A stretch of 64,000 nt of DNA from Thalia democratica (lineage: Eukaryota): the NCBI GenBank assembly GCA_965202585.1, contig OZ241829.1, positions 33,480,001 to 33,544,000 on the forward strand, read 5' to 3'. Numbering within the stretch: position 1 is the first letter of the stretch; the number at the start of each line of letters is the position of its first letter. Shown here in pieces: positions 10,905 through 53,169 of this stretch. Below the pieces are notes generated by a model that was not told the origin of the DNA, ran no database searches, and was given only the letters and a program-made list of their open reading frames with translations. The position numbers and the translations under genes were made by a program.

Positions 10905-13900
10905 CTGTTGGTGAAAAAGTTTAGGATTATAAAATTTTGACGGATTAAAAATAATCAATTACGTTTTTGATAAAAAAACAGCACTCTTTATATAAAACAA
11001 ATGTTTTTTAGGCTCGATTAATTAAAAAAAAACTATTAAACACTAGCTTATATTGATGAAACATAATAACAGCATATTGAAGTTTTTCGAACCGTCAAAA
11101 ACAAAACAACAATTTTAATGATGTTAACAACCTGATAGAAAAATGGGGATGGAGGTGCGCGAACCCGAGGAGGGGAGGCTTGGAGCAGGAGGTGACGAAT
11201 TTGAGGAAGTTGGAGGACTGCTTCGGAGTGAACTCCTTCTCGACCACCTCCCACAACCACCTGACCACCCGGTGCGATCCGTGGAACCCGCCGTAGTATA
11301 CCACGTGACTCCTTGAGATTACACGGTCGGTTGGTTGTTATTTTAATTAAATTTTTGCTTATTAAAAAAAACTGTTAGTTTGATATGGTAAATGTGAAAA
11401 GACTAATTCAAAATAAGTTGAACAATCTTTTCTGTAATTGAGGAAAACACGAACAAGTAAACATGCTTGGTTAACTTCCTCTTGTGTGAAACATGCTTTG
11501 AGAAAAAAAAAAGTTGTTTAAAACTAACTGTTATAAAATAATTTTTCAAAAAAAATTATTGCTACATGAAACAAATTCATTAACTCGCATTTTAAGAAAA
11601 CAACAAAACCATAAATTTTGTCAAACTTGAGGTCTTGGAAGTCGATGCCGACGTTGTCGCCCGAGATGAGGCGCTGAAACTCGGGGGCGGAGAACATTGC
11701 GGTCCACTTGAAGGGTATGATGGACCTGAAGCCGCGCAGGAACGCCCTCGTCTGCCGCTTGATCTGCGTGTGGAGGCGGAAGTGCGCCAGCGTGTGGATG
11801 TACATGAACCTTTATAATTTCAATTTGTAACAGAAGAGAAAGAGTTTAAAGTTTGTATGTTTGGTTGCTCAAACAATGTTCAAAACACTTTGTTGAGCAT
11901 TAAAGTCTGAACAACATAAGTTTATAATTTAAAGTGCACAGTTTTTGCACAAGTTCTCCTATAAAAACTGAACACTCCCTTCTACCTGTTGTCGTTGGTA
12001 ACAGGAATGGAGGAACCGCCGGGAACAAGTTCCGTGGTGACAACCTTGCCCATGAAGTCGTGCTCGTAGGTGAATGTGAGGCACAGCTGCGAGATGTCGC
12101 CTTCCGACCACCGCTTCATCCAAGTCAGGTTCTTGTAAAATTCAAAATCCAACGACGGCAGCTCGTCTATCGGGCTGGTGAATAAAAAAAAAGCGTTGTT
12201 TACCAATTAGTTTTTTTTTGCAACAACACACTTGATGTTTAAGATGTCTGTTAATAAAGTATATAACATCACTAAAGCAGTTTAAGAAAAATTTAGCTGT
12301 TTGCCAAAAAAAATGTATTGATTTACTTTTTTCACCTGTGATTTTTTTTATTATTTCTATTTGAATTTCTACGCGTTGTTTATGTATTTACGTTCTTAAG
12401 AGATTTTGATGTTCAGGGTTGCCATAGGTTTTTGAAAAACTTCCTCCAGGCTTTCTGATTTTTTTAGGTTTTCAAAAGTACAAGTTTTTTGTCTATTTTT
12501 AGCATAAAATAAGTTTATGGTAGAGAACTGTCCTAATTAGTATAATAACATTGATAGTATAATGTAAAACGACTTGAATTGTATTTTTAATAAAACTAAA
12601 ATTAATAATAAAAAATGTTTGCATCTATGACGAATTTTTTGTATCAGATCGAAATTTTATAACTTTATATGTTAAAATTATTTAAAATTTAAGTTTTTTT
12701 TATTGATTTTTGTTCAAAATTCCAATTTTTTTTTTTTAATTCAAAGTTTTTCAGCCTAAGTTACCAAATTCCAGGTGTTTTGGCAGCCCTGATAGATCCT
12801 ATTTTAAAACCAATCGTTTTTACTAGGTCAACTTTTGGTACCTATCAAATAACACATAAACTTTATAAGTGCGAGCTAAAATGCTTACATACAAAGGTTA
12901 CCACTGTGAGTTAATTAAAATACTAAATTTAGACTAACTTTAAAAGCAAGTCCAAAGTAAAAACATATTTTGAAGATGATCACGACTAGTGTTTACGTTA
13001 AAAACAATAAAAACTTTAGTCGTTCAAGCTATGTAAGGATCTTAACCTGTGAAGAGGCTGGTTGTTGTTGTTGAGGAGGTGCCGGAGGAAGAAGTTGGCG
13101 ATGGGAAGGTCGAAAAGTATTCCTTCGTACAGCGCTTTCGCCAGCATGCATCCCGCGAAGTGGAATATGACGTCATCTTGCGGGAATGACGTGGGTGACG
13201 GGTACATCTTCGCATCGCTCGTCACCTGTTTGTTTGTTTGTTTTGTACGTATTGCACACGTTTAAACAGGAAACTTTTAACCAACTGGTGAGTTTGGAAT
13301 TGATACTGTTATAGTTTGAGAAATTTTTAGTCACCTTATTTGACAAATTTTTACAATTAGTAACCTTCAGAAACATATTTGAAACATTTATATGTGTTTA
13401 TTTTTCGTACAAGTTGAAACAAAGATAAAACAGGACCTTTATAATTATCTGATGAACGAATACAATTTCTACGGCAGGGTTTTTCGTAAAATTTTGATTA
13501 AAAACTTGTCAACTAACCTTGAACAAGTTCATGTCCGGGTTGAATATTTTAGCCACGGTCTCCTCCAAAAACTCCTTGAAAACCCCGTCCTGGTCGATTC
13601 CCGCCTCGTCCAAGCCCAAATTGTTGACAAACTTCACCCTGATGGTCCCCTAGCGGATAAATGTAAAGTTTTCAATTTGCTTTGTAGGCGAAGATTGTTA
13701 AAAAAGGTGAATAACAAAGTAGGTAAACAAAAACTTTGCGCGAAATACTTTAAAAATCATATTATCACCATGGTTGTATAGCTTTTCACCTTGAGTGCTT
13801 TTGAAGACAGTTTGTTGAGTTGTTGAAACCCGTCTTCAACCAGCCTGCTCCTGTGGATCTTTATGTAAGCAGATGTGTTGTCCGGTGTTATTCCTGTGAT

Positions 13901-16900
13901 GTAAAAATTTGCTTGTTTTTGTTAAACAAACTAAAAAAGGTAAACCAAGCTTTCTTTAACAACTTCAAGTCATACTTTCTTGACAGTTAACAAAGTTGTC
14001 AAAATCAATAAAATTTTTCGAACAAAGGACAAACAAAGTCATAATGGTCATGTTTGTTTCAAACCGAGTTTTTCTTTGTCTCGAGCAACGAGCGATCTGA
14101 AGTAGATGACCCGGTCCTTGTGCGAAATGACGAACGGCATCTTGTTGAGGAGGAGCAGCGCTCTGGACGTTGATTGGTTCAACTCGCTCCTCAGCGTTGA
14201 CGCTTTCACTGATCTTTATAACATTTGTTTTTCACATTTAAGTTGTTGTGATGTTCAACTTTGATAAAAATTACAGTCAACTATGTGTATTGTAGGCGCA
14301 CAAAAATTTAACACTTAAAGTTCATACAAATGTTTTAGTTTACGCAAAAACTGCCCATTCAAAAAAACTTAGCTTTGAAAATTTACAAAAGCTCGACTTT
14401 AAGACAAACAGCTTATCAAAAAAACTTGAGAAAAATAAAAACTTTAATTTTGTAGAAAAGAACTACTCAAATTTTAAAACAACTACCAAACTATGCTTGA
14501 ACAAAAACCAACTTGATAAGCCAGTGGCTGTGAGGAGTGAAAGGTTTTCTGGAATCTCTGTCATACAAAATGGTCAAAAGTGAGTGGGCTGAATCGTACA
14601 CCAGCCGCAAATAGCTGCCTTCACCTGTTGAAGCTTAACTTGAATAAAATGTTCTGCGTGTTTTATATTAGACGTGTTATTTGTCACTATTTTTATTAGG
14701 AGACTCAATGCTTTTTTAAACACATAAGTGTTCAAGGTTGCCAAAGGTTTCTTGAAAATTCTTTCAAACTTTCATTGGTTTGTAAAAGTACGTGTCTTTT
14801 GTCCATTTTAAGTATAAAATTGAATTTAAGGTACTAAACTGTCCTAAATAAAAAGATGCTATAATATTTTTTATAGTAAATAAAATTCTAAATGATGCAA
14901 AAAACGGTATTTAATTTATTTTTGCATATAATCAAAATTATACTATTACACATATAAAAATTGTTTGATATTCCATGTTTTTGGACAACCCTGTAATGAC
15001 GTACCATTTCAAATAATTTCCACTACTCATATAATTTAAAATATAGAGGCAAAAATATGTGAGCTATATTTCGATTAGAGCATAAACTTTCAATTGTAAC
15101 TCACCATTTGTGGTTTTTTAGTGGTTTGCAAAGTTAAAGCTTCACAGGGGTCACATTAAAAATTAATCAAAAAGTATTAAACTAAGAATAAATGCATAAA
15201 AAATGTTTCTTATTATTTTGATATATAAAATAACTGCAACAAAAACTCAAGGCCTAAACCAGGCTTTGGCAACATTTTACAAATAACTAATCAAAAGAAC
15301 CTTGAGAAATGTAAAAAAATTAACTAATGCGTACCATTAATGTTAACAATTGTATAGAATAAGTATTTAGAAACGTAACAAGGCGTTTGTAGGTTTTTGT
15401 GTTCAAAAAGTCATTGTTTCAGATGGTAAATTTTTCTACATAACAAAATGAGTTTTATAAACAAATTATTAGAGAATTCGGAAAGCTATAAAAAAAAAGT
15501 ATCAACTAATTACACATAAATGAATTTAAAGTAACTTCAATAAAACAAGATTTTCTTTTAATTAAAAAAATGAAACGTTTTTTTGCACAAGTTGTTTTCA
15601 AACAAAAAGTAAGTCGGATCCGCAAACTCACACACTACTGACTTTACAAAAGGGTTACCAAGCAAATTTTAATAATAGTCCCTCTGCAGAAATTTTAAAC
15701 TACAATCGCCTCCTTTTAATAGAAATCACCCCTTTACAGGTTAATTTATACTTTATTTTTCACCCTCTAACTATCTGCTAGACCTGGTAGCCAAAATCAT
15801 ACACTTTATTGAACACTAATTTTGAGCTTAAAAATTGAAATGTTATAAGTCACCATGTTAAGTGATTAAATTAGAAACGATTTGATTTTAAACCCTATAG
15901 TTAAATGAATTTGACTCGAATAAATACTTTTAAATGTAATTAAGCGTTTGTGGTTTTTTTTTTCTGTGACTTGAAAAATAATTGCTATAGAAGGTAGAAT
16001 TTTCTACATAACCAAATCAAGTTTTATAAAAATGTAGATAACTAGAGATATGTGTAAATTAGGCAGTTCTTATTTTGTATAATTACTTCATATGACTAAT
16101 AAAATTCTTAAAACTCTTTAAATGCAAAGCTTAAATAGGTTCATCATTTAATACCAATACTGTTTACACAAAGTAAAAAATATAGAGGGCAAATTTGATT
16201 ATGCGTTATATGAATAGTTTTAGTTAATTTTCCTCAACTTTAAGCGGTTAGAATTAAAGATCGATTTTAAGACACTTTGTGTTAATATCGATTTGACTCC
16301 AATATATATGTTCTAATATTATAAGTATTTGTGTTTACTTTTAGCAATTTGCAAAGTAAATGACTTATAAGGTATTATTGCATTTGATAATAATTAAAGT
16401 GTATGAAGAAATTAGCAACAACAAATTAGTGCAATAACTACAAAGTTTTAAAATGCGCTTGTGTTTTTTCTATTCGAAAGTATTACAACATACAGCAACA
16501 CTCTAAAAAACTTAATAAATCAAAAGTATAATAAACTAGTTTCAATAAATGCAATTGGAAAATAAGCATTACGTGCTAGTTTTTTCTGTTATATTTTAAA
16601 TATATCATTTATTGTTATTAGGTTATACAATTTTAAGAACAAAAAACAACGGTTATTATATAAAAAACATTCATAAAACCAGTTTTTGTAATATTATAAG
16701 AATTTTTTTTTAATTGTCTACAAAAAATGTTTTCCGCATTTACTAGTTATATATCATTTTAAACAAACATACTTTTATCATAAAATCCCTCCCAGCAAGC
16801 TTTGAAGATGAATTGTTTGAGAAAAGTGGATATGGTGAGAAGCTCTTCCAAATGAAAGGGAACTTGCTGTTCGTAAAACTCCACATCATCTAACATTCTG

Positions 16901-19900
16901 TTAAAGTATAAAACAAATAATTGCTTTAATCATTTCCAATATCGTTAAAATAAATTGTTTTAAAAAAGTAGAATTTAAACACACTAGTAACTAAAAACAT
17001 AAAACTTTGTGAATAAAAACAATACTAAAAAGTGTGATAAAGTTCATTAGAACCATGTTTTATCAAAAAATAAGTTCACAACTTGTAATGAAAAAATTAA
17101 CAGCAGATACATTTTCTGTGTGACTCAAAGAAGGATGTTAAGGTCACGTGACAAACTTAACAACAAGCATGTAACAACAAACGATGCGATGTGGGCAGTC
17201 ATGTCGCAGAACAACGTGAACACCGCAAAGTACGGTCTGGATTGCCCAACGTCGAAACTCATCGCCTTCAGGAACAGATCCAGCCCGCCCTTCGGCCCCA
17301 ACTCGCATATGAACCTCCACAGCTTGATCAGAACGTCGTCCATGAATATCAGTCCTGCATTATTGTGAACACTTGTTTGAAAATAGTTTTAATACTTTTT
17401 TGATACACAGAAGTATATCTTAAATAGGTCAGTTGTTAATGTTGTTCTCAAACACCAAACTTAACTTGACATTCTTTGCATGATTTTATACTAGTTGTAA
17501 TATTTGTTTCAAATCCTTTATGTTTCAAATAAATAATCTTAATTGATGTACAAAATAGAAAACTAAAAGTTTTTGTGAACTTTCTTGCATATAATTTTAC
17601 CTTTTTTGAAGAAAAAGTTGTACTAAATTTTAGTTTTAACAACAAGTGTTTAATGATAACTTAAAATAATTTTCTTTGTGGTTTTTATTTAGTTTACATC
17701 TAATTTGAACTTATAAAACAACTTAAATAAAAATTTTGTATAATTTCTTTTGTATCGTTCATTATAACTTCTTCAACCTAATTTAAATTATTAGTCAAGT
17801 TGGGAACAAAGTTTTTTAAGTATTCATGTTGGTTAGTAATAAAAAATCAATACTTGAAGAAATTTTACAAAACTTGAATTTCAAACCGGTGAGCATCTCC
17901 ATTTTGAGCTGATTGGTGAATATTTGCAGGCAGGTGGTGAGGAGTTGTGACGTCATGCACACTGACGTCACCTCCTCGTACTCCAACTTTCTCCCTCCGC
18001 ACGGAAGCTGCACTCTTCCGTCCGTGTCGTCCCTTCCCACTATCATCCTGCGCAGGTACGAACTTATCTTCGTCGTCACTGGAAATGTTTTTTGCGAATG
18101 ATTTTACTTCAATAAAATAATTCAATAAAAGTTCTTATTTTTTATTTAAACTGAACATTGGTGTCTGTATTTCTGTGCTTTTTTTTTTTTGGAAAGTATA
18201 AACAACTGCCGTTCAAACCAAACTGATTTTTGTTACTCATAAAATTTAGTTTCTTTACTAAATAAAACATTAATAAAGGATTAGTACAGCAAAGGAAAAA
18301 TTAGTATATTCCAAATACCATATATAACAAAATAAGGGTTGATTTCTAGAATACAAACAAACAAAACCCTTCGTAGAATCAAAACAAATATTTTTTACTG
18401 AGGTATAAATGGCTAAGACTAAGTCCGACTTTTTTTTACTTTTAGTCTATTTTTTAGTCAACTAAATACTTAATAGAAACAGAATTATTAAATTAATGAT
18501 AAATACTTTTTTGTTTAGGTGGTTCCCCCTTGGCAACGATCTGTTCGGCGGAGGATGGGGTGGTGGTGACTTCGTGGAGAGGCTGCAGAGTGAGGAGGGA
18601 GCGGAAGATGGCCCGCACGAAATCTGGTTTCCATAGAAACGCCAGCTGCTTCCTCACCAGAGGCGTGAGAGAGTTTGAAACTCTGAAATTTGAAAAAAAT
18701 ATAAATATTTTTTTTTGAAATTAACTAATAAGTTATTAATTTTGGAAACTATAACTTTTTTGAAAATCTAGTTTTTTTTATCATTTTGAAAATATTTGAA
18801 GAAATCACATATTGACAGAAGGCGAAAAACTTTCTATAATTAAAAAAACAGGATACAAGTATAAAAGCTTTTAGTTTGAGTGGGAAATTGTACAACAAAA
18901 AATTAATGCTTTTCTATTGGATTTATATGTTAGAAAATTATCTGATAAGAAACTGAGGGAAAATTTATAACCAAGTTTTTATTAAATATTATTATAAACA
19001 GGGTGGCAACTGATTTTTTTTTCTTCTCGGTTTTCTGATTTTATTCCAGTTTTTTAAAAGTACAAGTTTCTTAATCTATTTTTAGTATAAACTTAAATTT
19101 AAGGTGAAAAACTGCTTTAAATAGTAATTAATATTGAAAAAATACAGTAAGGTACTTTAAAGGTGTTTTACAATAAATAAAACTCTAAAAATTGAAAGAA
19201 ATTATATTGTATATAATACATATTTTGTATAAAACTAAATTTAAAAAATTGTTCAAAATTCTTTTTTTTTTATATCTTTTTTACAGGTTCTTTTTTGCCC
19301 AAAATTTCAATATCCAAGTTAAACCCTGTATTCATTAACTGTATTTATCAACTTAAAATTTAATGCTTTGAGTAAAAAATTTTTAAGTTTTAAATGACTA
19401 TTTTCACAGTAAATCAACAAAATTATAAAAAAAAACAATAATAATGCAAAATTAAAACAAACTGATTAGATGTTTGTGGAAAATGTCCGAGTACCGAATG
19501 GTAAGTGGAAGTGGTCGAGTTGTTTTTGTCTTTTGTGTTTGATTCAATGTACACCAATATTTTCGTCAGTACTATCTGTCATAAAATTAATAAAACTCAT
19601 ATTAAAATTATAGAATTAAATAACAAAACAAAAACAACTTATTGCAAAAGTTAGAACCTATGTTTAATTATTTACGATAATATGGGCAGGCACTTTAAAC
19701 TTCAAAAACGATACTTTTAAATATATACAATCATTTTTAATACCAAAAAACTAAATTATTTATATGTACTTATTTTAATTACTTCAAAAAATATAAACAC
19801 GTAAAGTAGTAACGTTTATTGAACTCAAAAAAAAAACGATTTAAATGAAAAAACTCACAACGCAGTGTTTAGTGTGAGCTTGCAGCAGGTCGGTTCTACT

Positions 19901-22900
19901 CGCCAGAATTTCGACCAGATTGGCCAGCAGCGACAGGCAGCCAATCACCGAGTTGCTGACGTCATTTCTATGCAACGCCTGTATGACGTCATCAACAGAC
20001 AGATCCTTAAAAATTCTGGTTATGACGTCGTCTTTTTTAAGAAACGCACCGAACTCCTGTATGTTGTTTTAATAAGTTTAAATGATGGAAGGCACATAAA
20101 AATGAGACCATTCATCTTGTACATAATAATAATAATACAAAAACAGTTGAGAATTCAACCTTTAACGAACTTTTTAAATACTGTTTGGATTTTCAATACT
20201 TGTTTTTACTATAAAATTACCTCAAAAACTAATCTTAATTTTTAATAGAACGTTAGTTAGTTTGAAGAAAAATATATTTACTTTTTTTTTGGTATATACA
20301 CAACAACTATAAACAATCATTAGTGTTATTATTTACTAAAATTTAAAAAAAAATTTACATAAGTGTTTGAAATTTTAAAAATTATCTTGGTCTGGCTGGA
20401 TTTTGATTTGAAAAAAAAGATCTTGATCCAGTAGATCAATAATTTTGATGTTTTATTTTATTTTAAGTATTAATTCATCTAAGAATTTTAATCTAAGAAA
20501 TTCAGTAAAGTTATGTTTATAAACTACTAATCATAGGTACTATTATATTCCACATACCATAAATTTCATTAAATCATTAGAAAACTTTGTTATAATTAAG
20601 TCTAAGGTTTTTAAGTTTTAAAACTGTAAGTAAACTATAAGTATCTACTACCGTTATTATTTGATCTATTTTTTTATTTAAAATAATTCAAAGTAGCAAA
20701 TACTTACTAATGAACATAACTTAATACTTGAAATTAAAAAAAAAAACATTTAAATTATTGATCTACTGGATCCAGATCTTTTTTTCAGATCAAAAACCAC
20801 CCAGACCAAGATAATTTTTAAAATTTAAAGCAGTTTATGTTAAATTAATTTTTTCAATATACTGTTGTTATGTGTTTTTATTTATTATTATGTTCTAGTA
20901 AATAATTTAACAAATTTGATAAATAATGTTTTGTATAGTGATTTAAATCAACTTTGAATAAAGTATGCAAAGGTCAATTGATTAAGAATAAAAAATTTCG
21001 CCAAAAATAAAAACAGTACAAAAAAAAATGTTGTATCATGAAACGAACAAAGCAAAATGACAATGAATCAATTAATCAACATGCTTATATTGATCCCATT
21101 AAGTAAAACATATGCCGATAAAATAATGCATGTTGAAAAAATTTGCTTTGAATTTTTTATCAAATAATTATTAAATTTCTAAAGCTACGAAAACATATAT
21201 ATAAAAGTTTGCAAACTTATATATAATAGATCAATTACTATTTCTTAATGTGTCTAACACCATGGATTTGTTTGTGTTTGATAATTTGCCTAGATTTTGT
21301 GTTTTTTTCAGGGATTTTTTCGTTATAAATTTAGTGTGAATATTTTTGAATTATAAATGTTTAGTTTATACAAAAGAAGTTAACTTTTTTTCTTTTCATT
21401 TAGAGAGGTCCGCATCTTTCTAAAAATCAGAATCCGGTAGATTACTAATAAAACCTAAGTAAATGTTTTCAAAGGGTTTCAGTACAACAATTACACATTC
21501 AATTTATTTAAGAACATTCACAGTATAGAAAAGCGAATTTTTCTATGCATTTTATTACAACTTTTTATTAACTTTTAAGGGCTTAGTTTACTCAACAAGT
21601 TGTTTCCATTTATGATATCAGAATGTTGTAAGTTTCATAAAATAACTCTTTAAAGTAAAAAAATATTTATAAAATAAATAAAAATACTTTCGCGACTATA
21701 TATAAGAGCCCTTCAAATCCAGCTACAAATGTAAAGATTTCACAAAAAAAAAGTTCTTAATTAATTAAGTTAACGTTTTCAACTTTTTAAGTTGTCTACT
21801 ACAAACTATCTTCAAATGTATATTATCATTATTTGGTATACAACCTAAACTTATTATTAAATTTTTGTTAAGTGTCATTATTTTAGTTTGAGTAGTTCAA
21901 CAGTAAAAAAATAATGCTTAGTACAAATTTGAAAACTCAACATACTTTCGCAGTGATGAAAAACAAAAAATTAGAATGTAAAAATAAATTTATGGAAAAT
22001 AAAAGATATAGTACTTTAAATACATAATATATTTTTATAATCTTAAATTGTTTCCCTTATTTGTTTTTTATTAAAAATACGTATCACTTTTAACTGTTTA
22101 TTGTTGTCGTGCTGCTTGAAGTAATTTTAAATTTTTGTAAAAAATCAGTTAAATCAAATCAAAGTTAAAATTTTTATTTTACAACGTGAACAAACTCAAA
22201 ACATTTTACTATTTCTAACTTGCTTAACACAAACTTATCGTTTGAAAACACTTAACACTTTTACAAACACTATAGCAACAAACAAGTACTACAAATACAG
22301 CTTTTAGTACATTTTTTTTAATAAAAAAACTGTAAAGAAGGAGTAACCTGAGGTGCTCGCGTTCGAAGTTGCGTTATGAAGGAAGGGATGGTAAGAACGT
22401 TGATTAAAAACTGAAATGATGCCTCGTTTGACCACCTCACCGCCGATAACTGCCTGTTGTTTGGAGCACATTTTTTAATACAACATTCTGATATCATACA
22501 TACACAAAATTTGATGTTTTTAATAGTAAATAGTTTACTAAAACTTTTTCAGTAGCTTTAATATTTATACACTGACTGTTAATAAGTTTAAAACATTAAA
22601 GCTGCGAAAAGTAAGTTAAAAAATACAAAAATGATAACAGCTGTTTTCATTTAGTACTTATGACTGTAGTGATAGTTAGCACAGGGTTACCACTCGTTTT
22701 TTCAAAATTTTTTCCATGTTTTTAAAAGTACACATTTTTGGGTCTATTTATAGTTTAGAGTTAAGTTTAAGGTAAGAAACTGTGTTAAATAGTATAAAAA
22801 TATTGAAAAGATACTGTAAAGCTACGTTAAATATGTTTTTTAATAAAAAATTTTTTGATGATGACAAAAATTTTCTATTTATACCATAAATTTTTTGAGT

Positions 22901-28336: not shown

Positions 28337-28469
28337 AGTAAAACAGTTAGTTTATAACTAAAAACTACAAATTTAAAAAACTAAAATTACTGAGATTGAT
28401 AAACTTGTAAATATAGCATTAAGGTGCATTCATTTTAAAGGTTTGAATGAAAGTGTTAACAATATAAAA

Positions 28470-30715: not shown

Positions 30716-32100
30716 GAGATTGAAAAATTACTTTTGTTGAATGAAGTACTACATGAGAAACAGTATGGGTTTAGAGAAAATAGCACAACTGAATTAATTA
30801 TGAATCAGATTGTTGATGAGTTAATTGATGCTGGTGAGAAAAAAAATTAATAAATTGCCTTGTATTTTTGGATTTGGCTAAAGCATTTAACACATTTAAT
30901 CATAAAAGTTTAATATCAAAACTTAAAAGTTATAACATAAAAAGTTTAGTGTAAAATTTACTAAAAAACCATTAAAAAGATAGAAGCCAACAGCTGTCAT
31001 AAGTAATGTTGTGTCTGAGCATGAAATTATGAATGTTGGAATACCGCAAGGTTCTTGTTTGGGTCCTTTGTTGTTTCTTGTGTATATTAATGATATTTAT
31101 TCCTCTACTGAAATAAATATGAGATTGTTTGCTGATTATGCCTGCTTAAGCTACCAACATAGTGATCCTGAGTATTTAAATAAAGTTATTAATAAGGAGT
31201 TGGTTAAAGTTGATAAATGGTTGCGTGCTAACAAACTTTTCATTAATTATTCAAAAACAAATGTTTTGCTTTTCAATAAAACTTCAAAAAATTGTGAATT
31301 TAGTGTTAAGATTAATAATTTTATTATTGAGCAGAGAGATAGTATAAAATACTTGGGTGTGGTTTTGGATGATAACCTGAGTTGGAAGAAACATTTGGGT
31401 TCTCTGAAATCGAAATTGTCTAGGAGTTCTTATGTTCTGTCAAACTAGAGATATTATTTGGACTAAATTACACTTAATATGATATATTATAGTTTGTTTT
31501 ATCCGCACATCCAATATCGTATGTCTGCTTGGGTCAATGCTGCTTACTGTTACTTAAAACCAATTGTTTGTATGCAAAAAAAGAGTAATCAGGTATGTTT
31601 GTCATATTCCCGCCTTGACCACAACAAACTCTTTGTTTGAAAAAACTGGTGTGCAAAAATTAAATAATCTGTATAAATTGCAAATTTGTAAATTGATACC
31701 TAATACTATTACAGGGTTTGATGTGGAGCACATTAAATTTACTTTTGATAGCTCTGTTCACTCACACAACACGAGATTTTCAATAAAAAAAAAAATTTAT
31801 AACCAAAAGACCTAACACGAGACTTGGCCTAAACTGCTTTAGGTATTTGGATCTCAAGTTTTGGTCTAGTGTCCCTGAATATTTTAAAATCTTTAAAAAT
31901 AATTTGTTTTAAATTTAGATATAAAAACTTTTAGTTAAATAACTACAAGGAGTTGATCTAGAGTGCTTCTGCATGTATGTTTTGTTTGTGTTGAAATTTG
32001 ATTCATGTTATATGGGCATCAGATCGTGATATGTGGGTCTTTTATTTTATGAATGACCTGGTAATGAAAGAGTGATTGTTATAAATTATTGAAATAAATT
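30716..32100 (+). mobile_element. 5'-truncated CR1/L2-group LINE, degenerate reverse transcriptase
   Basis: QYGFRENSTT, FLDLAKAFNT, GIPQGSCLGPLLFLVYINDI, LFADY, IKYLGV motifs with frameshifts and stops (ORFs 31011-31448, 31564-31815). Confidence 0.92.
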
Positions 32101-35590: not shown

Positions 35591-35703
35591 GTCTTGGAAA
35601 AGAAGTTCAATTGTATCCGAGTAGTGTACGGCTACGAGGTAACCGAAAGGTTTTTTCGTGCACCGGTCCTCGCATCAAATATTCCGCTTTTTTTTGTCGT
35701 TCC
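35591..35703 (+). repeat. SINE-like repeat copy
   Basis: gtatccgagtagtgtacg...taaccgaaagg...ccggtcc...gtcgttc. Confidence 0.5.
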
Positions 35704-37549: not shown

Positions 37550-37558
37550 TCATTCCCC
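37550..37558 (-). CDS. WDR20: WDR20 putative terminal exon (GE*), followed by a 3' UTR-like stretch to about 37050 or further
   Basis: aaaacag acceptor at 37559-37560, then GGG GAA TGA and a moderately GC-rich stretch; inferred. Confidence 0.45.
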   Translation of the reverse strand, partial: GE

Positions 37559-43500: not shown

Positions 43501-46500
43501 ATTAATTGAAAAATAATTTTGACATTTGAACTTTTAAAACATTTGAAATTTTTGGTGTTTTAAGTTTTTTTACGAGAAAAAATATTGTGTTTTTTAACCA
43601 TTGTAGAAAAACTGACTATTCAAACTCAGGCTGCAAAACGAAAATAATAAGAAATTTACTCAAACTAATCCAATAAGATAAACGTTGTACAAGTTTTTTT
43701 ACAACTTTCAATTGCTTTTTCACCATTGCAAAAACTTCAAGCTAACCTTAAAGAAACACTTCATGCTGGAAATTTTTTATGTACTATTTTATACGGTAAA
43801 ACAATCGAGAAAAGTCTACAGAAAAAAGCAAAACTAATCTAATAAGTATTATCATCAAAGTTTATTAACGATATTATGTTTTTGTAAACAAAAATAAAGT
43901 GTTTACAATAAAAGTTGGTGCCAAACAATAGTTGTTGACCACGTCAAATTAATTACAAACAAGCAGTAAAGTTCAAAGACGAATTATGAAAGTTGCTTGG
44001 AATGTTCTCAAGTGCAAGCTATATGCACCATGTGTAATTTGTCACATATTTGCGATAAAATCTATTAGCAACTGGTATTGTTTATCAGATGAAAAATTTT
44101 AACTAGTGCTTCTTTTCTAATATTATTTCTTTTAGGTTGACCTAGGACCATTTATGTAACAAATTTGAATTGAAAAGATTAAACGAATTTGTTTGTTTAA
44201 GGTATTAAAAATAATTTTAAGTTTAATTATTTATTGTAATAAAATTGTAGAAACAAAATATAAGGTTTTCAACATTATTAAGCATTTACCAATTGCACCA
44301 GTACAAATTTTAATTAAATGATTACTTATTAGTTTTTAAAAGTAAATAATAACCTTTGTATGATAAAGATTACTTTTTGACTTGAATTTTTATAATTGCT
44401 CTATAAACAAAACATAGACTAACTAAAACTTTCATATAACACTTAATTTACTAACAAAAACATAAATTACAGTTAAACAGTAGACAATATAAACAACCTT
44501 TACAGCTTCGCGACTGCCGTTCTTTTTTTCCGCTTGAGACTTCTTGTTCTTGTCGTGGCGAAAGCCCTGAAAGAAGGGAACCGAAGCATTCCTCTTGTGA
44601 ATTTTCTTCTCCTTCCGGGTTCCCCTCCGTTCGGCGCTGCCCAATGTGGCGAACTTGCCGGCGAACGAGGGCCAGCTCTTTTTCTTCTTTACCTCTTCCC
44701 CATTTCCGGGCAACTGCGGGTTGCTAAGCGACCGGTTGCTCAGCGAGCCCCCGTCGACCTCAAGGGTTGACTTGGCTCCGTTCGTCCCTCCGCTGCTGAC
44801 GGAGGCGGAGGACGAGTTGGGAGCTTCCGACAGGTCGTCCTCTGAAGGTGCCGCGTTGCCGTGGCTACCGCCGCGGAGGGGCAGGAAAGTGCACGTGGCG
44901 CGTTTCTCCCTGGCGCACGCCAGCACGTTCGAGTCGACTTCCCACAAGCACAGTTGCGAGTCTTGGCCGACCGAGCCGAAGCGGTACGAGAGGGAAGGAA
45001 CTTCGTCGGCCGTCGACAGCCGCGACAGCTTGGACACGTTGCTGAATGTCCGCAACCGCCGCATGGACGGCCGTTCCCCGTTGCCAAGTAACGTACCGTT
45101 GACCTTGGCGCCTTCCTCCTTCACGGTGAGCTTGGCGGCGAGCTGGTTCGTTACGTCATCGACGCTGGGGAGGTCGTACAGGCTGCTGACGTCATCGTCC
45201 GACGGAATTTCTGTGCAGTGCGGGTCGAAGGCGACGTCGGTGATCCACGAGCTGTGGCCCGTTCCCCTGGCCACGACGCAGCCCTGGCAGAAGCTCCAAA
45301 CGGTGACAAGGTCGTCCTCGCCGCCCATGGCAATGAATCGGCCGTCCGGGGACCAAGCGCAGCAGAGCAGCCCCCCAAAGTAGCTCTTCATCGAACCGAC
45401 CAATCGGAAGGAGGAATGATCGAACACCCGCAAGAACCCGTTCTAAAAAAGGTTGCTACTTTAAATGTCTTTTTTAATAAAAAAAATTTGATGATGACAA
45501 AAAAAAGTTTATCAAATCAAAATTTTACTACTTTACGTTAAAATTGTTAAAAATTTCAGGTTTTTCCAGATTTTTTAGTCTAAATTGTCAAATTTCAGGT
45601 TTTTCCATGTTTTCAGGTTTTTGCTATTAAAGTTGTTTTTAAAAATTCTTAAGTGCTTTCAGAAAAAATATTCATTATAATTAAACAATCGCCTCCCATT
45701 GAAAATGAGTTTTACGAAAATTATTTGTTTAGGCATTTAACTGTTGCAACAATGTTTAAAACTAGGTAAAAATCAAAAATTCTATACAAGCGGAAGAAAT
45801 TATAAAGAGCAATAATTTTAAAAATAACATCATTTTTCATTAAACCATAGAAAGTATACTATATAATGAACATTTTGATTATTAAACTTAAAAATATATT
45901 TATAGACGTTACAAAATACTCAAAGCACTTTAAACAGTGAATAACAAATTTAAAACAGACCTGCTAAAAATTGTATTTTTGTTTAAAATGGCAACATGTT
46001 TATAGTGAGCAAAATACATAAATTAAACCAATTACTTGCGTTACGACGGCCAGGTACTTGCCGCACGGGGAAAACTCCACATTATTCACAGCCGACCCGT
46101 CCTTGGTAACCACCCATTTGTACAGCGGGTTGTTGGCGCTTGGCAACGCGTCGCTACCCGCTTCCGACGACCCGTTGCTATGGGAAACGGCGGTGGACTG
46201 GGTGGAAGAGCTGGCGTTTGAGGACTTCTGGCTGACGTCGAGTTTGAAGACCTCGAAGTCGCCGTCGCTATGGACTGGCTGTCAACATTTTATAAACAAC
46301 TTTGTTTTGTTGTCATGATGTATGTTGAGATAGAATAAAATGTTAAGTGTTAAAATTAAAATAAACTAAACTTAAAATCAATAATTTACGTAAAATAAGT
46401 TTAACTTTTTTTTGTTTCGTGTTAAAATTAACTTCATAACTCAGAAAAAGTATTAAACAAAACACCAATTAATTTTTCATTTATTTTGATTGACAGCTCT

Positions 46501-49500
46501 AATTAAACATATAGAGAAAAAAATCAGCAGTTTCATAAACAAAACTCAAATAAATGCAAACTTTTTCGTGGTAGGTGAGCGACACGTTGCTGCACTGCTG
46601 TGTGACGTCATAGGTGTACATTGTGCCGTTGTTATGGGAGGCTAGCAACAGCTTGTCGTTGCCAGGGTACCACTTGACGCAGGTCACCCTTGACTTGTCC
46701 ACTGACCGCTGTTTAAAATGAATACATAATAATTGTTTTTTTGTTAATTTCTAATTTATTAGAAATCATTTTCTAGTTTTTTTGAAATAATACTTTTCAT
46801 AGCTCAAATATAATTGTCAAATGATCTTGTATGACTATGAATTGAATACACAACGATTTAAATTCTGAAATTTCAAATTTTAATTATTGTAATTTATATA
46901 CTTTAGTAAACATTTATTACTACACAATCTTGTCAATTAGACCTTCTGGTACACTTCTTGTTTTATTTAAGTTCTTGTTAACTTTAAACAAATAGTTTAT
47001 AAAATAATTTACAACAATTTTAATGTTTAATTAACTATAAGTTTTAAGTACGCACTTCCAGATAAATATGCATTCTGAGTACACATATTTTGACAAGTAC
47101 GCATTTTAGTACGAACTTCTTATTCAGTACAAATTTTTGAACCAAAATAAAAACTTTCTGTCAGACTTCTTTTTATCTAGACTAGTAACTTTTAGCTACA
47201 AACGTTCTATTGAATAGCTGCTGTGTTCAGAATGTGCACTTCAGCGAAAGATAACTTTGATAAGTAATTGAAATGTTAAATAAATAATATAAATCTAATT
47301 ATTAAAAATTTTGCAATGAACTAAATATACTTTTTCTCACTGCTTACCTCTTTGCAAATAATCTCTAAAAGTCACAAATGTGAAGTAAACTACTGGCAAT
47401 TAATTTCCAATTAAAATACTTAAATTAAACCATAATTAGTTCTGCTAAACGAAAAATTATGTAAAATAAATTTTTGAGTAAATATCAAAGTTTTACTATA
47501 GAAGTGTCCTTGATCATCGATACTAAAAAGATTACATACAACAACTACTTGTTCAAAGCAACCTGTTTCTACTTTAATGGTTCAACATGTTTCTGGAAAA
47601 AATTCGCAATTTTAGTCTGACTTTATTAAGGATTTTCTTATCTAATTTTACCATTTGAAAGCTTTGGAATTTAATGGTTATAAAGCAAATTTCTAAGAAA
47701 ATTTTGCAACTTTAGTCTTACTTTAAAGGGCTAATGTTAACTTTTACCGTTTTAAGGTTTTGAAAATTAAGGAATTTAAAAATTAGAACTGACAAATTCT
47801 GACATTTTGCCATTTTGACCTAAAAAAGCTGACTTTTGGTCATTTAGACCCCAAAAAACTGACTTAGCCTGATTTAGCCAGACCCGTGGCAACCCTGTTT
47901 TAGTCAAACGTTTTTATCCCAAATTGATGAAAAGGTAAACAGCAATACTAAAAATTTTGCTCAAAAGTATAAATAAATTATAGCAAAAAAAGTTATTAAT
48001 AAAAAATACATTTTGCATTTTTTAAGTTTGAAAAAACTATCTTATAAAACTGCTTTATTTCTAAGAAGGGTTTGCATGCAACATATTTACTTAATTTAGT
48101 GAATTATTGCTAACATTTCAATTTGCTTTTGTATAGTTTACTGTCATAATTCCTTATAATTTTGCACATAACGGTGAAATTATTATTATTCAACTTCAAT
48201 AGAAACTTCGAATAACTCAGATGATTTCACACTACAAAACGTATATATAGATGTTTACAATTAAAGATTTATATAGCTGAACGAGATTTTACAGATAATC
48301 TTGAAAAAATTTTGAACCGTTTTAAGTTTTTCATCTTTTAAAATAACAAGTGATTATATAATTTAAAAAGATAATAGTTAAAAACACAAAATTAAATGAC
48401 ATAAAACTTAAATAAATTAAGGTTAAATAAACATAATGTCAATTACAGTTCAGTATTCACTCTACCTCTACTACCTCATACTAAAGACAAAAAAACCTCT
48501 GACTCACTTTTTACTAATAAAAATCTGATTAGTTGATATTAAATCAAATAAATTTAATTTTTTAATTTGAAAATTGGAAACTTTAAATTTTTTTATATAA
48601 AGAATTTGACATCTTTAAGTTATCAATAAAAGAATAAAAAATGGTCAGCTGAGGTATTTTTCAAATTTAAAAGAGAAAACAAATTAAAGCTGTAATATTT
48701 TCAAATTACCTCAAGCAATATACTACAAACGTATCCCAAATTTACAGTTTCGCAAAACAAACTAAAACGCAAAAGGAAATCAGGCAACTTATGTTAACAA
48801 AAATCTTATTAAGTGTAGCTCTCTGCGTTTACACTCAAATCAATAAAACTCGAGCTCAACACAAGCGCATTCTTAGTACACATTTTCAGCCGTGCTCCTT
48901 ACATCTGTGCAAAGCTAATCAATACATCAACAAAGGCGACACTGATTTATTGCATTGTGACACATCACACTGCGAACCAGGTTGAAATCAGATCGCAAAA
49001 TGACTGATTTCGGTGTCAACGAAAAAACATTGGCAAATTTCTAGTCACAATACACAGCTTTGTCATAAATAATTCAGGCGCAATCAAAGCATCTGCTTAT
49101 TTATATCAAGCTCTCGCCTCCCAAAAGTCGTGCAACAAAGTTTTTGATATTTGAACGAGCAAGCTGTTTTGATTTAATTCTTGAATGGGCTCCCAAAACG
49201 GGTGGGCTTTTTTTTCTTAAGACAAAGCATTAAGCATTAGAGAAAGCTTATAAATTAAAACAAACTGTCAGGTTCTTATTGAATGTTTTACAGTTTTAAT
49301 GCGATTTACAAAGAAATACTTTAAAAGGTTGTTAAATATTATTTAACATATAATTTTTTAAATTAAAAACATTAAAATTATAGATTAAGGACTTATTTAT
49401 AAAAAACTAAAAGTAAAAAGAAAGCCAAAGCATCATTATCAGTTTTTCACTATAACAAAATTATTTAAATTTATCATGTTTATTCAATATACTATACACA

Positions 49501-52500
49501 ATACATAAATTACTAAGAAAGTAAATAATCAATATAACTAAATCGTTAATTGATTTTTTTAACTTTAAATCAAAAACACATGTTTGTAAATATTATTTTG
49601 TTGAATAATAATATTAAATTAGCAGTTACTTAACATAAATTTTATACCGCAAAAAATTAATTATTTCAAATTTAATCTAAAAATATGTTTTTAACTGATT
49701 CCATTCAAACTACAAAAATATGTTTAAAAATTGTTTTGGAAAATTACTACATAATGCTAATAGTCTAAAATTTATTTAGACTCTAGTTATTATAAAAATT
49801 ATTAATGAGCTTTTCATATTTCATTTAGATTTGTTTATACAGGCTATTTAAGCAAAAACAAGAAAGTAGGCCAACAAAACAGTTAAAAAACCACACACAC
49901 AACAACACAGTCCACGCTGAAAAATTTTAATCAAAGGACACAGAAAATTACAACCGAAAAGCGAATTTCCAACAAAAAAAAGCAAACTAAACCACTAACG
50001 TCTTCGTTCATGATGTGGAGGCTGCTCTTCGTCTTCACGTCGATTATCTGCACCTGCCCTGCCGTGAACCCCACCGCCACCCTGACCGACGTGCCGCTCG
50101 CAGTGTGCTGGTTGATGTCGTGACAGGTGGGCGCCACCCCGCGGTACGTCCGCTTGTCTATGAAGTCCAACTGCTGGTTCTCCTGATCGGTTGATATTTG
50201 AACTTAAAGTAGTGAGATTGAGTTTAAATTTATACGTTTATCTTTATTTTTGTGATAAAATTTTTTAACGAAAAAATTTTTAGAGATGAACTACTGCAAA
50301 GTGGTAATTATTTCAATAACATTAACATTAAATGAAAATTTTTTGAAACAGTGAAAAATGTTTGAATAAAAAATGACCGCTTTTATATGAAGTCCAATTG
50401 CTGATTTTCCTGATTGATAATATTTGAACTTATAATGGTAAAACCTATTTAAAATCGTAAAGGCTTGGAGAAACTTTCATGGTGCTATATGCATCACTAA
50501 AACATATGTTTTTATTTTTATAATGAAGATTTGAAAAAGGAAAAGTTTTTAGAGATGAAATACTACTAAGTGGTATTTATTTCGTAAACATGGAATAACT
50601 AAATATTTTTTGAGACTATGAAAAATTTGAAAATAATAAGTTAGAATTCGAAATTTTTAATTTTACAATGCATTAGACAAGTAAAATTACTTTGGTTAAA
50701 CTATTTTAAATTCTTGAAATATGTAACTAATATTATAACGTGCAAACAAACTTTCATAGTAACTATTCTGAAGAATGCATACAGAAAAATTAAATTTATT
50801 GTAATATAAAGTAAACCGTTCGTTTTTTTTTTTTAACTTCTAATTAATACACACTAAACATGCTGTTAGATTATTTTTGAGTAAAACTTTGTACATTTAA
50901 CTTATAAAGTATTTTTTAAAGTCTTAAAATAACCCATTTTCGTTCAAATTAATATTATCTTAGCTTTCGCAGTACTTTTTATGTTTTGCATAGTTATTTG
51001 TAGTTTATTGATTGCTATTTTGTAGTTTACTTCTATTATTTGTGCTTGATTGATTAGTTTTTAAAATAAAATTTTATTTTCATAAAAGAATTACTTTAGT
51101 TTAATTAAAGCAATACTTAGTAAATTTAATTTTTCAAAAAGGTTTTATTTGTAACTAAATGGTAATTTAACACATTTTAAGTCTTCCAATACATTTTATT
51201 AATTATTAGAGCTATCCAGACCTTTTTAAAAGCACACTAAACCATTATGTTTAAAACAAAAAATTAAACAGTACACAATATTTTACTTTCTAATTTAACC
51301 CTAAAACGGTCAAACTACTTAAAAAAGTGTGTATTATTTTCAAACCAGCAAAATAACAAAATACATTAACAGTGTATTTAAAAGTATAAGAAGAACAAAA
51401 TTAAATAACTAACTATTTTTGAGACCATAAAAAGTATATTAGTAAAAAGTAAAATAAAATTCAATAAACGAAATAAAGTAGCATCAACAAAAAAAATCAA
51501 TTGAACTTAAAAAATCATATTCTTAACTCTAAAATTCAACTACTACCTGCTGTATTGCTTTATGCAAAAAATAGAAAAGTTCTCGGCCAATAGTGAGGCA
51601 AATACAGTCTTCTTCTCCGTTCCCATTGTCAATTTTGACAAATGAGGTCTTTACTGGAGTGGAATTTGAAGCTGTGACCTTTAAAAACATGTTAACAGTG
51701 ATATTTTTTAACGGTCATTGTAGTATATCAAAGACAATATAGCATACTTTTAGAGCAAGTTTATAAAGGACAACTTTCCTATAGATTTAGTGAAAGCAGT
51801 GATAATAATAATTTACTAAATATTGATATAATTTTTATACGTTTATCTAATCTTAATTTCTGAGAAGACCTTATGCAAACAGGTTTTAAGTTTTAAAATT
51901 CAGGGATGTAAAGTATTTATTAAACGTTGGTATTTGTAAAATTCTGCTTAGTGGCAAATATGTAAATGAATTTTAGAAACCCAGATTCCAAATTCAACAC
52001 TCTATGAATATGTGTGGACAGGTATAAAATATTAAAAATTACTGAAAATATACCTAATTTTAATTTTTGGCCATATTTACTTAAGTTATAAGTTTATAAA
52101 AAAGAGTAATGATGTATTTGCTAAAATCATTTCATATAAATTATTATTGGAAAAAATATTATAAAAATTTTTGGAAAAAAATTCTTTCTTGAAAACTTTA
52201 TTTTTAAACTTTTCAACTAACTGGTAAATGTTAGAATGTTCTTAAATAATTTTAAAATATAGCACATTTCATAACTAAAATTTTTTAATCTATTTATTTT
52301 ATTACAACAAAATTCAATACAGAATTTTCACTAAAACTTAAGAAAAAAAATACAATATTGGAAAACAAAACTCTTTTTTTTTCACAATAAGGCACTTTTG
52401 TCCAAACTTTTTCTTTTAAGTTGTTATAGTCATTTTTACTTGATAGTTTTTACAATTTATTTAACATAGCATAGATAAATAATGTTTTTATAACAACTTA

Positions 52501-53169
52501 TTTCTGTTACTTACTAAAACTATACTTCAAACTTTAAAACATTTTTTTTGCTATTGTTTTTAGTAAAATAAACTTTTAATAAAATAAAAAAACAATGACA
52601 ATAATTTATTTAAATTCATCAAGACTTTTAATAAAATTGTTTATACATTTTAAAATGATGAATTGAATAAAATTACATTGTAATAAAGTATATTTTTTAA
52701 TAACTTTTACAAAGTAGTAAAACTTAAATCATCTCTAATTTTCTTTGGTTTATTTATGTAACATAACTTCAGTGATTTTTTAACTATAACTTTGATATGT
52801 AAACTCTACAAAATAACCTTAAAAAACTTGGAAATATGGAAAAATTAAAAACACACTTGAAACTATTTAGCTTATAAATCAAAATCTCAAGTTTTTTTCA
52901 TACTTTATAAAAACTAATAGTCAAGTTTATTATATAAATGACAACAGATGGTCAAATATTAAACTTATTTTTGTGATAAAACATTTGCAATTTATTAAAA
53001 ACTAAAAATTTTCAGACAAAAACAAAAAACTTACTGTCTGCTGTGAACTTGAGTACTGTGGAGTTTTTCCATAAAAGCTTTCAGCGAGATGCATTATTTT
53101 GTACTTTCCTTCTCTAGTAGTGAAATGTGACTTCACCTGGTTATTTTTTCCAGCATTGTCTTGTGCCAT
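37550..53169 (-). CDS. WDR20: WD40-repeat protein WDR20/DMWD orthologue (USP12/USP46 activator family), 8 coding exons, ~656 aa
   Basis: Motifs [79 protein letters not shown] and LEPIVCKKIA are characteristic of WDR20/DMWD. Phase-0 GT-AG introns throughout. Confidence 0.92.
37790..38200. promoter_or_regulatory. CpG-rich non-coding island, candidate cis-regulatory module or internal promoter
   Basis: GC/CpG-elevated, no coding match; tandem atcaattagc, two cagctg E-boxes, (TA)n tract. Confidence 0.35.
40246..40586. mobile_element. hAT MITE in WDR20 intron 7
   Basis: caggggtcggca...ttccgactg with perfect 8-bp TSD ttatagaa. Confidence 0.85.
41087..41496 (+). mobile_element. MITE family B copy
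   Basis: cagggttgccac...gtggtaaccctg; flanks ctaagt/ctaaat. Confidence 0.88.
41955..42131 (-). CDS. WDR20: WDR20 exon 7 (EEVMSLGSELCPR...QLWRRPE)
   Basis: gacacag acceptor; GAG|gtgact donor (alternative donors lie just downstream). Confidence 0.88.
44498..45442 (-). CDS. WDR20: WDR20 exon 6 (NGFLRVFD...GSREAVK)
   Basis: ttttttag acceptor, AAG|gttgtt donor; ORF 44432-45433. Confidence 0.93.
46036..46278 (-). CDS. WDR20: WDR20 exon 5 (...NPLYKWVV...FSPCGKYLAVVTQ)
   Basis: tgacag acceptor, gtaatt donor; 81 open codons; absent from the ORF track. Confidence 0.92.
46562..46708 (-). CDS. WDR20: WDR20 exon 4 ([13 protein letters not shown]...)
   Basis: taaacag acceptor, gtttgc donor. Confidence 0.92.
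48790..49210. promoter_or_regulatory. GC-elevated intronic island, candidate enhancer
   Basis: tgatttat, aacaaag x2 and atcaaag motifs in otherwise very AT-rich WDR20 intron 3. Confidence 0.3.
50000..50182 (-). CDS. WDR20: WDR20 exon 3 ([15 protein letters not shown]...IMNED)
   Basis: gatcag acceptor, gttagt donor. Confidence 0.92.
50150..50640. repeat. Diverged tandem duplication (period ~227 bp) spanning the WDR20 exon 3 acceptor
   Basis: Units start ccgctt at 50150 and 50377; shared blocks tgaagtccaa, atatttgaactta, tttttagagatgaa. Confidence 0.85.
51547..51678 (-). CDS. WDR20: WDR20 exon 2 (PVKTSFV...ICLTIGRELFYF)
   Basis: tttaaag acceptor, CAG|gtagta donor. Confidence 0.9.
53035..53169 (-). 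CDS. WDR20: WDR20 exon 1 ([24 protein letters not shown]...)
   Basis: ATG at 53169; donor gtaagt; tttcag acceptor at 53246-53247 in the 5' leader. Confidence 0.9.

Follow-up and report, generated by a model that had tools for sequence, protein, structure and literature searches.

The 5' splice sites of the UBE3B and WDR20 genes

The stretch of DNA examined here, referred to throughout as the window, comprises 64,000 nucleotides of contig C5 in the genome assembly of the salp Thalia democratica (802 Mb in 1833 contigs). Its G+C content is 26.8%, and published figures for this species are 790.7 Mb and 25.3% G+C (PMC13746493). Two genes are evident in it, UBE3B and WDR20, both on the minus strand, and RNA matching the window is present in marine metatranscriptomes. 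The subject of this report is the 5' splice sites (donors) of these genes, about half of which begin with GTT, together with the U1 small nuclear RNA (snRNA) genes whose products may read them.

Profile hidden Markov models (HMMs) were built from 24 full-length orthologues of UBE3B and from 48 orthologues of WDR20 and run against the open reading frames (ORFs) of the minus strand. For each pair of adjacent exons, every frame-compatible GT/GC..AG junction was enumerated, and the joined peptide was scored by the HMM. Intron ends, reading frame and homology were the only criteria, and the scoring was therefore blind to the donor consensus, including position +3. The resulting features are listed below, with alternative donors where homology does not separate them; the RNA evidence (runs X1, X2 and X6) is described in the next section. 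All of them are on the minus strand.

10655..28333, minus: UBE3B coding region; 21 coding exons and 20 introns, a colinear exon chain by the 24-orthologue HMM
41860..53169, minus: WDR20 coding region; at least 7 exons and 6 introns, by tblastn and the 48-orthologue HMM
25875..28199, minus: UBE3B intron 1, donor GTTTTT; homology only, margin 2.5 bits
25352..25657, minus: UBE3B intron 2, donor GTCAGT; homology only
25088..25249, minus: UBE3B intron 3, donor GTACAC; ambiguous, near-tie with GTTGAA at 25240; homology only
24601..25000, minus: UBE3B intron 4, donor GTGATA; homology, margin 11 bits
22454..24439, minus: UBE3B intron 5, donor GTGAAA; homology, margin 5 bits
20057..22347, minus: UBE3B intron 6, donor GTTACT, fixed by homology; acceptor at 20054 or 20057
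19576..19858, minus: UBE3B intron 7, donor GTGAGT; ambiguous, near-tie with GTTTTT at 19854; homology only
18683..19462, minus: UBE3B intron 8, donor GTTTGT; homology, margin 6 bits
17995..18506, minus: UBE3B intron 9, donor GTATTT; homology only, poorly fixed
17355..17886, minus: UBE3B intron 10, donor GTTTGA; homology, margin 8.5 bits
16898..17182, minus: UBE3B intron 11, donor GTTTGT; homology, margin 10 bits
14625..16772, minus: UBE3B intron 12, donor GTATGT; RNA contigs X2 and X6, loose end beyond 14624 equal to 16773-16802
14214..14512, minus: UBE3B intron 13, donor GTTGGT, acceptor AAAG; RNA contig X2 record 7, 14213 joined to 14513
13894..14064, minus: UBE3B intron 14, donor GTTTGA; RNA joint in X1, X2 and X6
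13650..13789, minus: UBE3B intron 15, donor GTGAAA; RNA joint in X1, X2 and X6
13226..13517, minus: UBE3B intron 16, donor GTTAGT, a perfect match to the A6 U1 arm (see below); RNA joint in X1, X2 and X6
12175..13046, minus: UBE3B intron 17, donor GTTAAG; RNA joint in X1, X2 and X6
11810..11985, minus: UBE3B intron 18, donor GTAGAA, acceptor AAAG; RNA X6 record 16 and loose ends in X1 and X2
11312..11626, minus: UBE3B intron 19, donor GTTTGA, acceptor CAAG; RNA joint in X1, X2 and X6
10905..11131, minus: UBE3B intron 20, donor GTTGTT; RNA joint in X1 and X6
51679..53034, minus: WDR20 intron 1, donor GTAAGT; ambiguous, GTTCAC at 53048 scores higher; homology only
50183..51546, minus: WDR20 intron 2, donor GTAGTA; three near-ties; homology only
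46709..49999, minus: WDR20 intron 3, donor GTTAGT; homology, margin 4 bits
46198..46561, minus: WDR20 intron 4, donor GTTTGC; ambiguous, homology only
45443..46035, minus: WDR20 intron 5, donor GTAATT; homology, margin 11 bits
42132..44497, minus: WDR20 intron 6, donor GTTGTT, as chosen in the preliminary description; ambiguous, homology only

The preliminary description of this DNA, made from its letters alone, had listed donors for the same two genes, and of the 26 donors of the rebuilt models 24 are identical to its choices (18 of 20 in UBE3B). At UBE3B introns 3 and 7 its choices, GTACAC and GTGAGT, came out as runners-up, at most 1.5 bits from a GTT alternative; two extra donors that it gave, gtttag and gtgact, could not be located in the rebuilt models. 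Introns 1, 2, 4 and 6 of WDR20 are weakly fixed by homology. In the conserved C-terminal half of UBE3B, the GTT junctions are the best by 7-13 bits and have no GTR alternative.

RNA evidence for the introns

Contigs from three RNA runs matching the window, namely X1 and X2 (marine metatranscriptome) and X6 (a small exon-only run, organism A), were placed on positions 10700-16699. All the UBE3B introns that could be checked in this way (introns 12-20, nine of nine) were matched to the base by joints or loose ends of the RNA contigs, and six of these nine have GTT donors; the two junctions seen as loose ends only were compared letter by letter. The preliminary description had allowed for RNA favouring nearby GTR donors instead, and the junctions turned out to be exactly those of the models. 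Each of the nine skipped stretches reads CT..AC on the plus strand, and the GT and AG ends of major-type introns hold at all nine joints. None of the nine exon joints was seen in the DNA run X5, which is precisely what introns predict in DNA.

The metatranscriptome contigs diverge from the window by 3-5%, mainly by exonic T-to-C and A-to-G changes, and a sister lineage is therefore present in the ocean samples. The related DNA sample of run X5 (organism B) carries six inserted bases, together with substitutions, at the donor of UBE3B intron 17 (window positions 13036-13046), so that this donor would read GTCAAG there, as against GTTAAG in the window.

Three of the nine RNA-confirmed introns have AAG acceptors, and one of the nine acceptors follows a CAAA repeat (pyrimidine share 0.25). 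The 3' splice sites are likewise relaxed (acceptors at 14214, 11810, 11312, 13226 and others), with a mean pyrimidine share of 0.54 between positions -23 and -4 compared with 0.50 in the background.

Donor composition in the window and elsewhere in the genome

The preliminary description had reported GTT at 15 of 28 introns. The shift is borne out by the rebuilt models, in which the base at +3 is T in 14, A in 7, G in 4 and C in 1 of the 26 window donors; also borne out are the single GTAAGT (one among 26) and the presence of T at +4 in 7 of the 13 donors with +5G. The sense strand of the window introns is, however, 39% T and 37.5% A, and the base following any intronic GT is T, A, G and C with frequencies of.50,.29,.12 and.09, a background from which the composition at +3 in the window does not differ (p = 0.79). 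Because the GTT share equals the intronic background (0.50), the finding is a lost preference for purines at +3, and not an excess of T.

Independent loci were taken from two gene families. Actin-family genes were modelled on a reference put together from exon ORFs at one actin locus of the same genome (L029), which replaced a poor first reference, an intronless actin-family gene on C7 that is Arp4/BAF53-like; HSP70-family genes were modelled on two long ORFs from the same genome. Junctions were retained when they scored at least 8 bits above any other donor, and duplicates were removed. In the actin family, +3 was T in 28, A in 24, G in 8 and C in 1 of 61 donors, and in the HSP70 family T in 17, A in 16, G in 5 and C in 1 of 39. 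For GTT junctions in the actin and HSP70 genes, as in the conserved half of UBE3B, the margin is 8-50 bits and there is no GTR alternative.

Pooling the 26 window donors with the 100 from elsewhere (n = 126) gave T in 59 (47%), A in 47 (37%), G in 17 (13%) and C in 3 (2.4%). Compared with the background, T is unchanged (p = 0.53), A is slightly raised (p = 0.04) and C is about four times rarer than expected (p = 0.007). A purine stands at +3 in only 64 of the 126 donors, and the GTRAGT consensus does not hold at this position. GTT donor usage is thus a real, lineage-wide feature. It should be noted that an intron had to be GT-AG to be counted among the 126; the modelling also admitted GC donors, which were left out of the tally.

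Other positions are still informative, namely -2A, -1G, +5G and +6T; -1A occurs in 18% of the donors, and +7 and +8 are at background composition. The compensation between the exonic AG| and +5G proposed in the preliminary description is evident both in the window, where AG| is found in 11 of 13 donors without +5G and in 1 of 13 with it (Fisher p = 2e-4), and in the whole set (30/40 versus 28/86, p = 1.6e-5). Since this seesaw persists and positions -2, -1, +5 and +6 are kept, the donors appear to be read by U1-type pairing. The commonest hexamers are GTTAGT and GTAAGT (12 each, tied), GTTTGT (11) and GTGAGT (10). At +4, A is enriched after a +3 purine (42/64) compared with 23/59 after +3T (p = 0.004), whereas T after +3T (26/59) is at background rather than enriched. 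No donor of U12 type (/RTATCCTT), with ATCC at +3 to +6, occurs among the 126.

A relative of WDR20 (P0002, at a locus with 35.5% GC) has GTGAGT and GTATCG donors and clear pyrimidine tracts; it was left unused, its junctions being weakly fixed. Six tandem HSP70-family paralogues at C4:40948404-41072497 share intron positions and have near-identical donors.

Three classes of U1 snRNA genes

In the duplex between U1 and the donor, nucleotide (nt) 6 of U1 lies opposite intron position +3 and nt 9 opposite exon position -1. A pattern search of the genome with U1 nt 1-32, allowing at most 3 mismatches, gave 69 copies, to which further ones were added from matches to the Rfam model RF00003. The best matches have the arm AAACUUACCUG, which is canonical at nt 3-11 and has A for U at nt 2. 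Three classes can be told apart by their recognition arm. The canonical class, with the arm ACUUACCUG, counts about 45 copies. The A6 class has the arm ACUAACCUG (A for U at nt 6) and at least 20 copies: 18 copies in the census read AAACUAACCUG, a linked A17-to-G change being present in 17 of the 18, and two more are among the Rfam matches. The U9 class, with at least 14 copies, has the arm ACUUACUUG (U for C at nt 9) and reads AAACUUACUUG. A6 lies opposite +3U, and GUUAGU is therefore fully complementary to the A6 arm; U9 is able to pair with -1A. None of the copies in the genome census had a base other than T at nt 5 or an ACAAAC arm of the Entamoeba type.

Several features suggest that these are not decayed copies. 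All classes score between 97 and 132 bits against RF00003 (A6 97-119, U9 108-122), well above the gathering score of 69.5, full length being taken as model positions 1-166. Over 23 aligned copies, 98.5% of the cells form standard pairs, and compensatory double changes separate the classes at 11 of 40 pairs, compared with 0-3 pairs in slid-partner controls; the observed covariation score was reached by 0 of 500 shuffles. Examples are a G-C to A-U change in helix H, an A-U to U-A change in stem I, two adjacent pairs in stem III and three in stem IV, while in stem II compensated differences are also found within classes. The recognition arm is invariant inside each class in the 23 aligned copies, and departures from it in the wider census are confined to degenerate copies resembling the canonical class. 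The loop I and loop II motifs GATCAGGCAG and CATTGCAC, for which a role in protein binding would be expected by analogy, are invariant or nearly so in all classes, and all have a U-rich single-stranded stretch (by analogy, an Sm-type site) before the last stem.

The upstream box TGACGTCA is found about 75 nt 5' of the U1 genes, at equal spacing in all three classes, which are interleaved in common clusters on C4, C5, C6 and C9. In two A6 copies, L057 and L060, the box is missing or mutated, and these two may be dead. The compensatory stem changes and the shared promoter box lead us to argue that the A6 and U9 loci are maintained, functional genes and not debris. The variant U1 snRNAs that the preliminary description had conjectured thus find support at the DNA level, in at least 20 A6 and at least 14 U9 full-length genes.

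Two U1-like copies, C10:26715836 and C10:26722117, were taken as pseudogenes, one scoring 49.5 bits, below the gathering score, and the other giving no match. A metagenome scan with a pattern covering all three classes gave no match.

Every U1 class starts with AAAC, and not AUAC (e.g. L001:1501-1664). The AU dinucleotide at the 5' end of U1 has been described as strongly conserved and as adjusted to the cap-binding complex (PMC5766165). The A at nt 2 could pair with +7U; position +7 is at background composition.

U6, U1-C and other components of the spliceosome

Among the U6 genes, the eight top copies are identical and canonical through the ACAGAGA box and beyond, with UACAGAGAA, and twelve loci share the top Rfam score. 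No intact U6 with a changed ACAGAGA box was found among the copies, the weaker of which are degenerate and the weakest have a degraded box; L072, L073 and L078, although among the low-scoring copies set aside as degenerate, keep ACAGAGA. A gene of METTL16 type is present, with an open frame of 447 amino acids (aa) and a PF05971 score of 229.5 bits, as are two LUC7 genes, both of which the preliminary description had proposed to look for. Its suggestion of a changed U6, or of a changed N6-methyladenosine (m6A) mark on U6, finds no support in the sequence, given the canonical U6 and the intact frame of the METTL16-type gene.

The U6-like gene L072 (89.5 bits) has a replaced 5' stem-loop and an intact ACAGAGA; it occurs as three repeats (C6:57864269, 57935357 and 57962337) beside genes of the U9 class and canonical U1 genes.

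Vertebrates have one U1-C gene. Near-perfect U1-C zinc fingers (75-80 bits) were found here in first exons or genes at three loci, C5:42821417, C6:6713584 and C1:93578412 (L069-L071). One of the U1-C-like loci is an intronless gene of 220 aa, and in two the T at residue 11 is replaced by C and the T at residue 23 by A. Three U1-C-like paralogues thus stand alongside three U1 classes. The preliminary description had also suggested an altered U1-C or LUC7 specificity; nothing observed here links these genes to position +3.

Long uninterrupted frames were seen for the METTL16-type gene (447 aa), for the PROCN domain of PRP8 (744-aa frame) and for one LUC7 gene (329 aa), at C5:38935362-38936207, C5:48224320-48225537 and C5:51476567-51477274, which suggests intron-poor or retro-copied versions. 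PRP8 was dropped as a source of introns, its PROCN domain lying inside a single 744-aa frame. Identical U5 genes recur every 15-16 kb on the unplaced contigs C26, C37, C79, C100, C141 and C208, and the repeat unit is therefore a long tandem one.

How the donors may be read

The introns are ordinary U2-type GT-AG introns that have lost the near-universal purine preference at +3 genome-wide; the base at +3 follows the T-rich intron background, with C alone avoided. We consider it probable, if by no means certain, that their donors are read by a mixed population of U1 small nuclear ribonucleoproteins (snRNPs). Donor reading would then be split over snRNPs with three recognition arms. The arm ACUUACCUG would pair with GUAAGU and, by wobble, with GUGAGU; A6 of the arm ACUAACCUG would form a Watson-Crick pair with +3U, GUUAGU being its perfect match; and U9 of the arm ACUUACUUG would pair with -1A, easing the use of that base. 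Together, arms with U or pseudouridine at nt 6 and arms with A6 would leave +3 free to drift towards the T-rich background while keeping C rare. Each of A, G and U at +3 would have some U1 partner and C would have none, which fits the depletion of C alone. No U1 class offers a match for the +4U that often follows +3U. This base could instead be tolerated, or helped by pairing with the ACAGA of canonical U6, a view put forward for Entamoeba (10.1101/2022.06.08.495308) and, more broadly, for +4U (PMC13326754). For all this, the variant U1s would have to be expressed and to act on GTT donors, as their genes lead us to infer. A more specific version, in which three co-expressed isoforms (U6/C9, A6 and U9), possibly with the three U1-C paralogues, divide the introns among themselves and so free +3 and -1 from a constraint that holds in other animals, we put forward tentatively, as somewhat less likely to be right than wrong.

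Several observations weigh against a mixed U1 population. The variant U1s are known here as genes, and A6 genes make up about one quarter of U1 genes while GTT accounts for about one half of the donors. At +4, A is not enriched in GTT donors (23/59), although it would find a partner in nt U5 of the A6 arm. Strict partitioning among the classes would make -1A and +3T anti-correlated; we looked for a depletion of the -1A/+3T combination and found none. The frequency of +3T is that of the background, a result to be expected of neutral drift as well, with no special U1. Finally, the 126 donors come from about 35 genes in three sets, with many paralogues.

Drift of this kind is the most serious competitor, although we regard it as rather unlikely. 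Under strong AT and T mutation pressure in introns and weak selection at +3 and +4, the donor consensus would have been worn down; canonical U1 would tolerate the mismatch at +3, with AG| or +5G/+6U supplying enough pairing, and the variant U1 genes would be silent or minor copies, as most human variant U1 genes are. This would account for T and G at +3 equalling the intronic GTN background, for +7 and +8 being likewise at background, for the strength of the seesaw between AG| and +5G over the 126 donors and for the lability of +3 at the donor in which organism B differs (13041-13046); moreover, thaliaceans are reported to be very AT-rich and to lack several base-excision-repair genes (PMC13746493). 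Drift does not explain, however, why two arm-changed U1 classes have been kept at 14-20 copies each, with compensatory stems, an invariant arm and an intact promoter box, or why the depletion at +3 is confined to C. In Plasmodium and Dictyostelium, for example, whose genomes are likewise very AT-rich, GTA is retained. An explanation centred on U6, in which GUUUGU-type donors are favoured through continuous pairing of +2 to +6 with ACAGA, as has been proposed for Entamoeba and as with +4U in yeasts, perhaps together with lowered m6A on the adenine of ACAGAGA, appears improbable to us. The frequent +4T after +3T and the presence of GTTTGT and GTTTGA among the top hexamers would suit it; the potential for such pairing is noted in the Entamoeba preprint (10.1101/2022.06.08.495308), and lower U6 m6A is reported to favour +4U, and larvacean tunicates to have altered snRNA m6A (PMC13326754). 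Yet U6 is canonical in sequence, the METTL16-type gene is intact, +4T in GTT donors does not exceed the background, and the explanation accounts for +4 better than for +3; it may also act jointly with U1 variants rather than instead of them. That the GTT donors are an artefact of annotation, the real ones being GTA or GTG sites close by, we hold to be extremely improbable: some WDR20 junctions and those of UBE3B introns 1, 3, 7 and 9 are indeed not uniquely fixed by homology, but for the introns checked against RNA the idea is refuted by the exact match of all nine.

Comparison with known systems

In Entamoeba, GUUUGU(U) donors occur with a co-evolved U1 arm, AACAAAC (10.1101/2022.06.08.495308). 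Several features are shared with the salp: in both, donors have U at +3 (and +4), a substitution in the U1 arm restores Watson-Crick pairing, the ACAGA of U6 is unchanged, and the arm is preceded by an A that could pair with +7U. The complementary substitution is found here in A6 against +3U, GTTAGT being a top hexamer, whereas a near-universal donor and a sole altered U1 are not. Entamoeba is intron-poor, its donors are almost all of one kind (GUUUGU, about 88%), and it has one U1, which is altered; the salp is an intron-rich animal with heterogeneous donors (47% GTT), nt 6 alone is changed, no copy with an ACAAAC arm having been found, and the A6 U1 coexists with canonical U1, the largest class, and with the third class, in which nt 9 differs.

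Larvacean tunicates (Fritillaria and Oikopleura), which belong to the same subphylum, also have a major spliceosome with shifted splice-site specificity (PMC13326754). In larvaceans, GT and AG themselves are replaced, the snRNA sequences are canonical, and a U2AF duplication and snRNA m6A have been implicated (PMC13326754); here, in contrast, the introns are still GT-AG, the relaxation is at +3, +4 and -1, and it is the sequence of U1 that varies. The lineages with GUAUGU donors (Saccharomycotina, Giardia and Trichomonas; 10.1101/2022.06.08.495308) share an atypical pyrimidine in the donor hexamer, but their change is at +4, has no compensating change in U1 and occurs in intron-poor genomes. 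As in humans, where variant U1s (vU1s) have been described (PMC5159530, PMC8457000, PMC10870369), U1 here is a multigene family in which variants, some with changed arms, are interspersed among canonical genes. Each variant class in the salp, known as genes, makes up about one fifth to one quarter of the U1 genes, has a uniform arm and matches a large class of donors. Human donors, unlike these, keep the canonical consensus, and the vU1s are minor species that are not known to match a class of donors. Among the papers searched, none joins thaliaceans and U1 variants, and none deals with the splice-site composition of salps.

Few features of eukaryotic gene expression are as well conserved as the purine at donor position +3 and the U1 arm ACUUACCUG, and to the best of our knowledge the cases described so far in which the arm has changed along with the donors come from protists poor in introns. 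If the reading by mixed U1 snRNPs is true, an intron-rich chordate relative, with GTT at roughly half of its donors and with multi-copy U1 classes whose arms match them, would be an example of a 5' splice-site code made broader through diversification of U1. Such a split code would be a natural in vivo counterpart of the engineered suppressor-U1 experiment and would offer a natural system for the study of how U1 isoforms choose introns; it would also bear on therapeutic suppressor U1s, by indicating which arm changes are tolerable to a whole transcriptome. In the annotation of thaliacean genomes, gene finders that have learned GTRAGT as the donor will put many exon ends in the wrong place.

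Occurrence of the snRNA promoter box in exons and introns, and other features

The box TGACGTCA is also the commonest 8-mer in the coding exons of UBE3B and WDR20, with 7 sites in 5.2 kb compared with about 0.1-0.4 expected. All the sites in the window (13168, 17948, 17963, 19957, 19984, 45187 and 46603) are exonic, and three of them extend to TGACGTCA[CT]ACAG. In addition, several actin and HSP70 introns begin with GTGTGACGTC and/or finish with ATGACGTCACACAG (L028, L033, L034 and L097). The box in exons and introns is identical to the snRNA promoter element, and these sequences look like the terminal inverted repeats of a putative intron-creating mobile element.

A fragment of a reverse transcriptase of the long interspersed nuclear element (LINE) type lies at window positions 30984-31815 on the plus strand, inside the 13-kb gap between UBE3B and WDR20.

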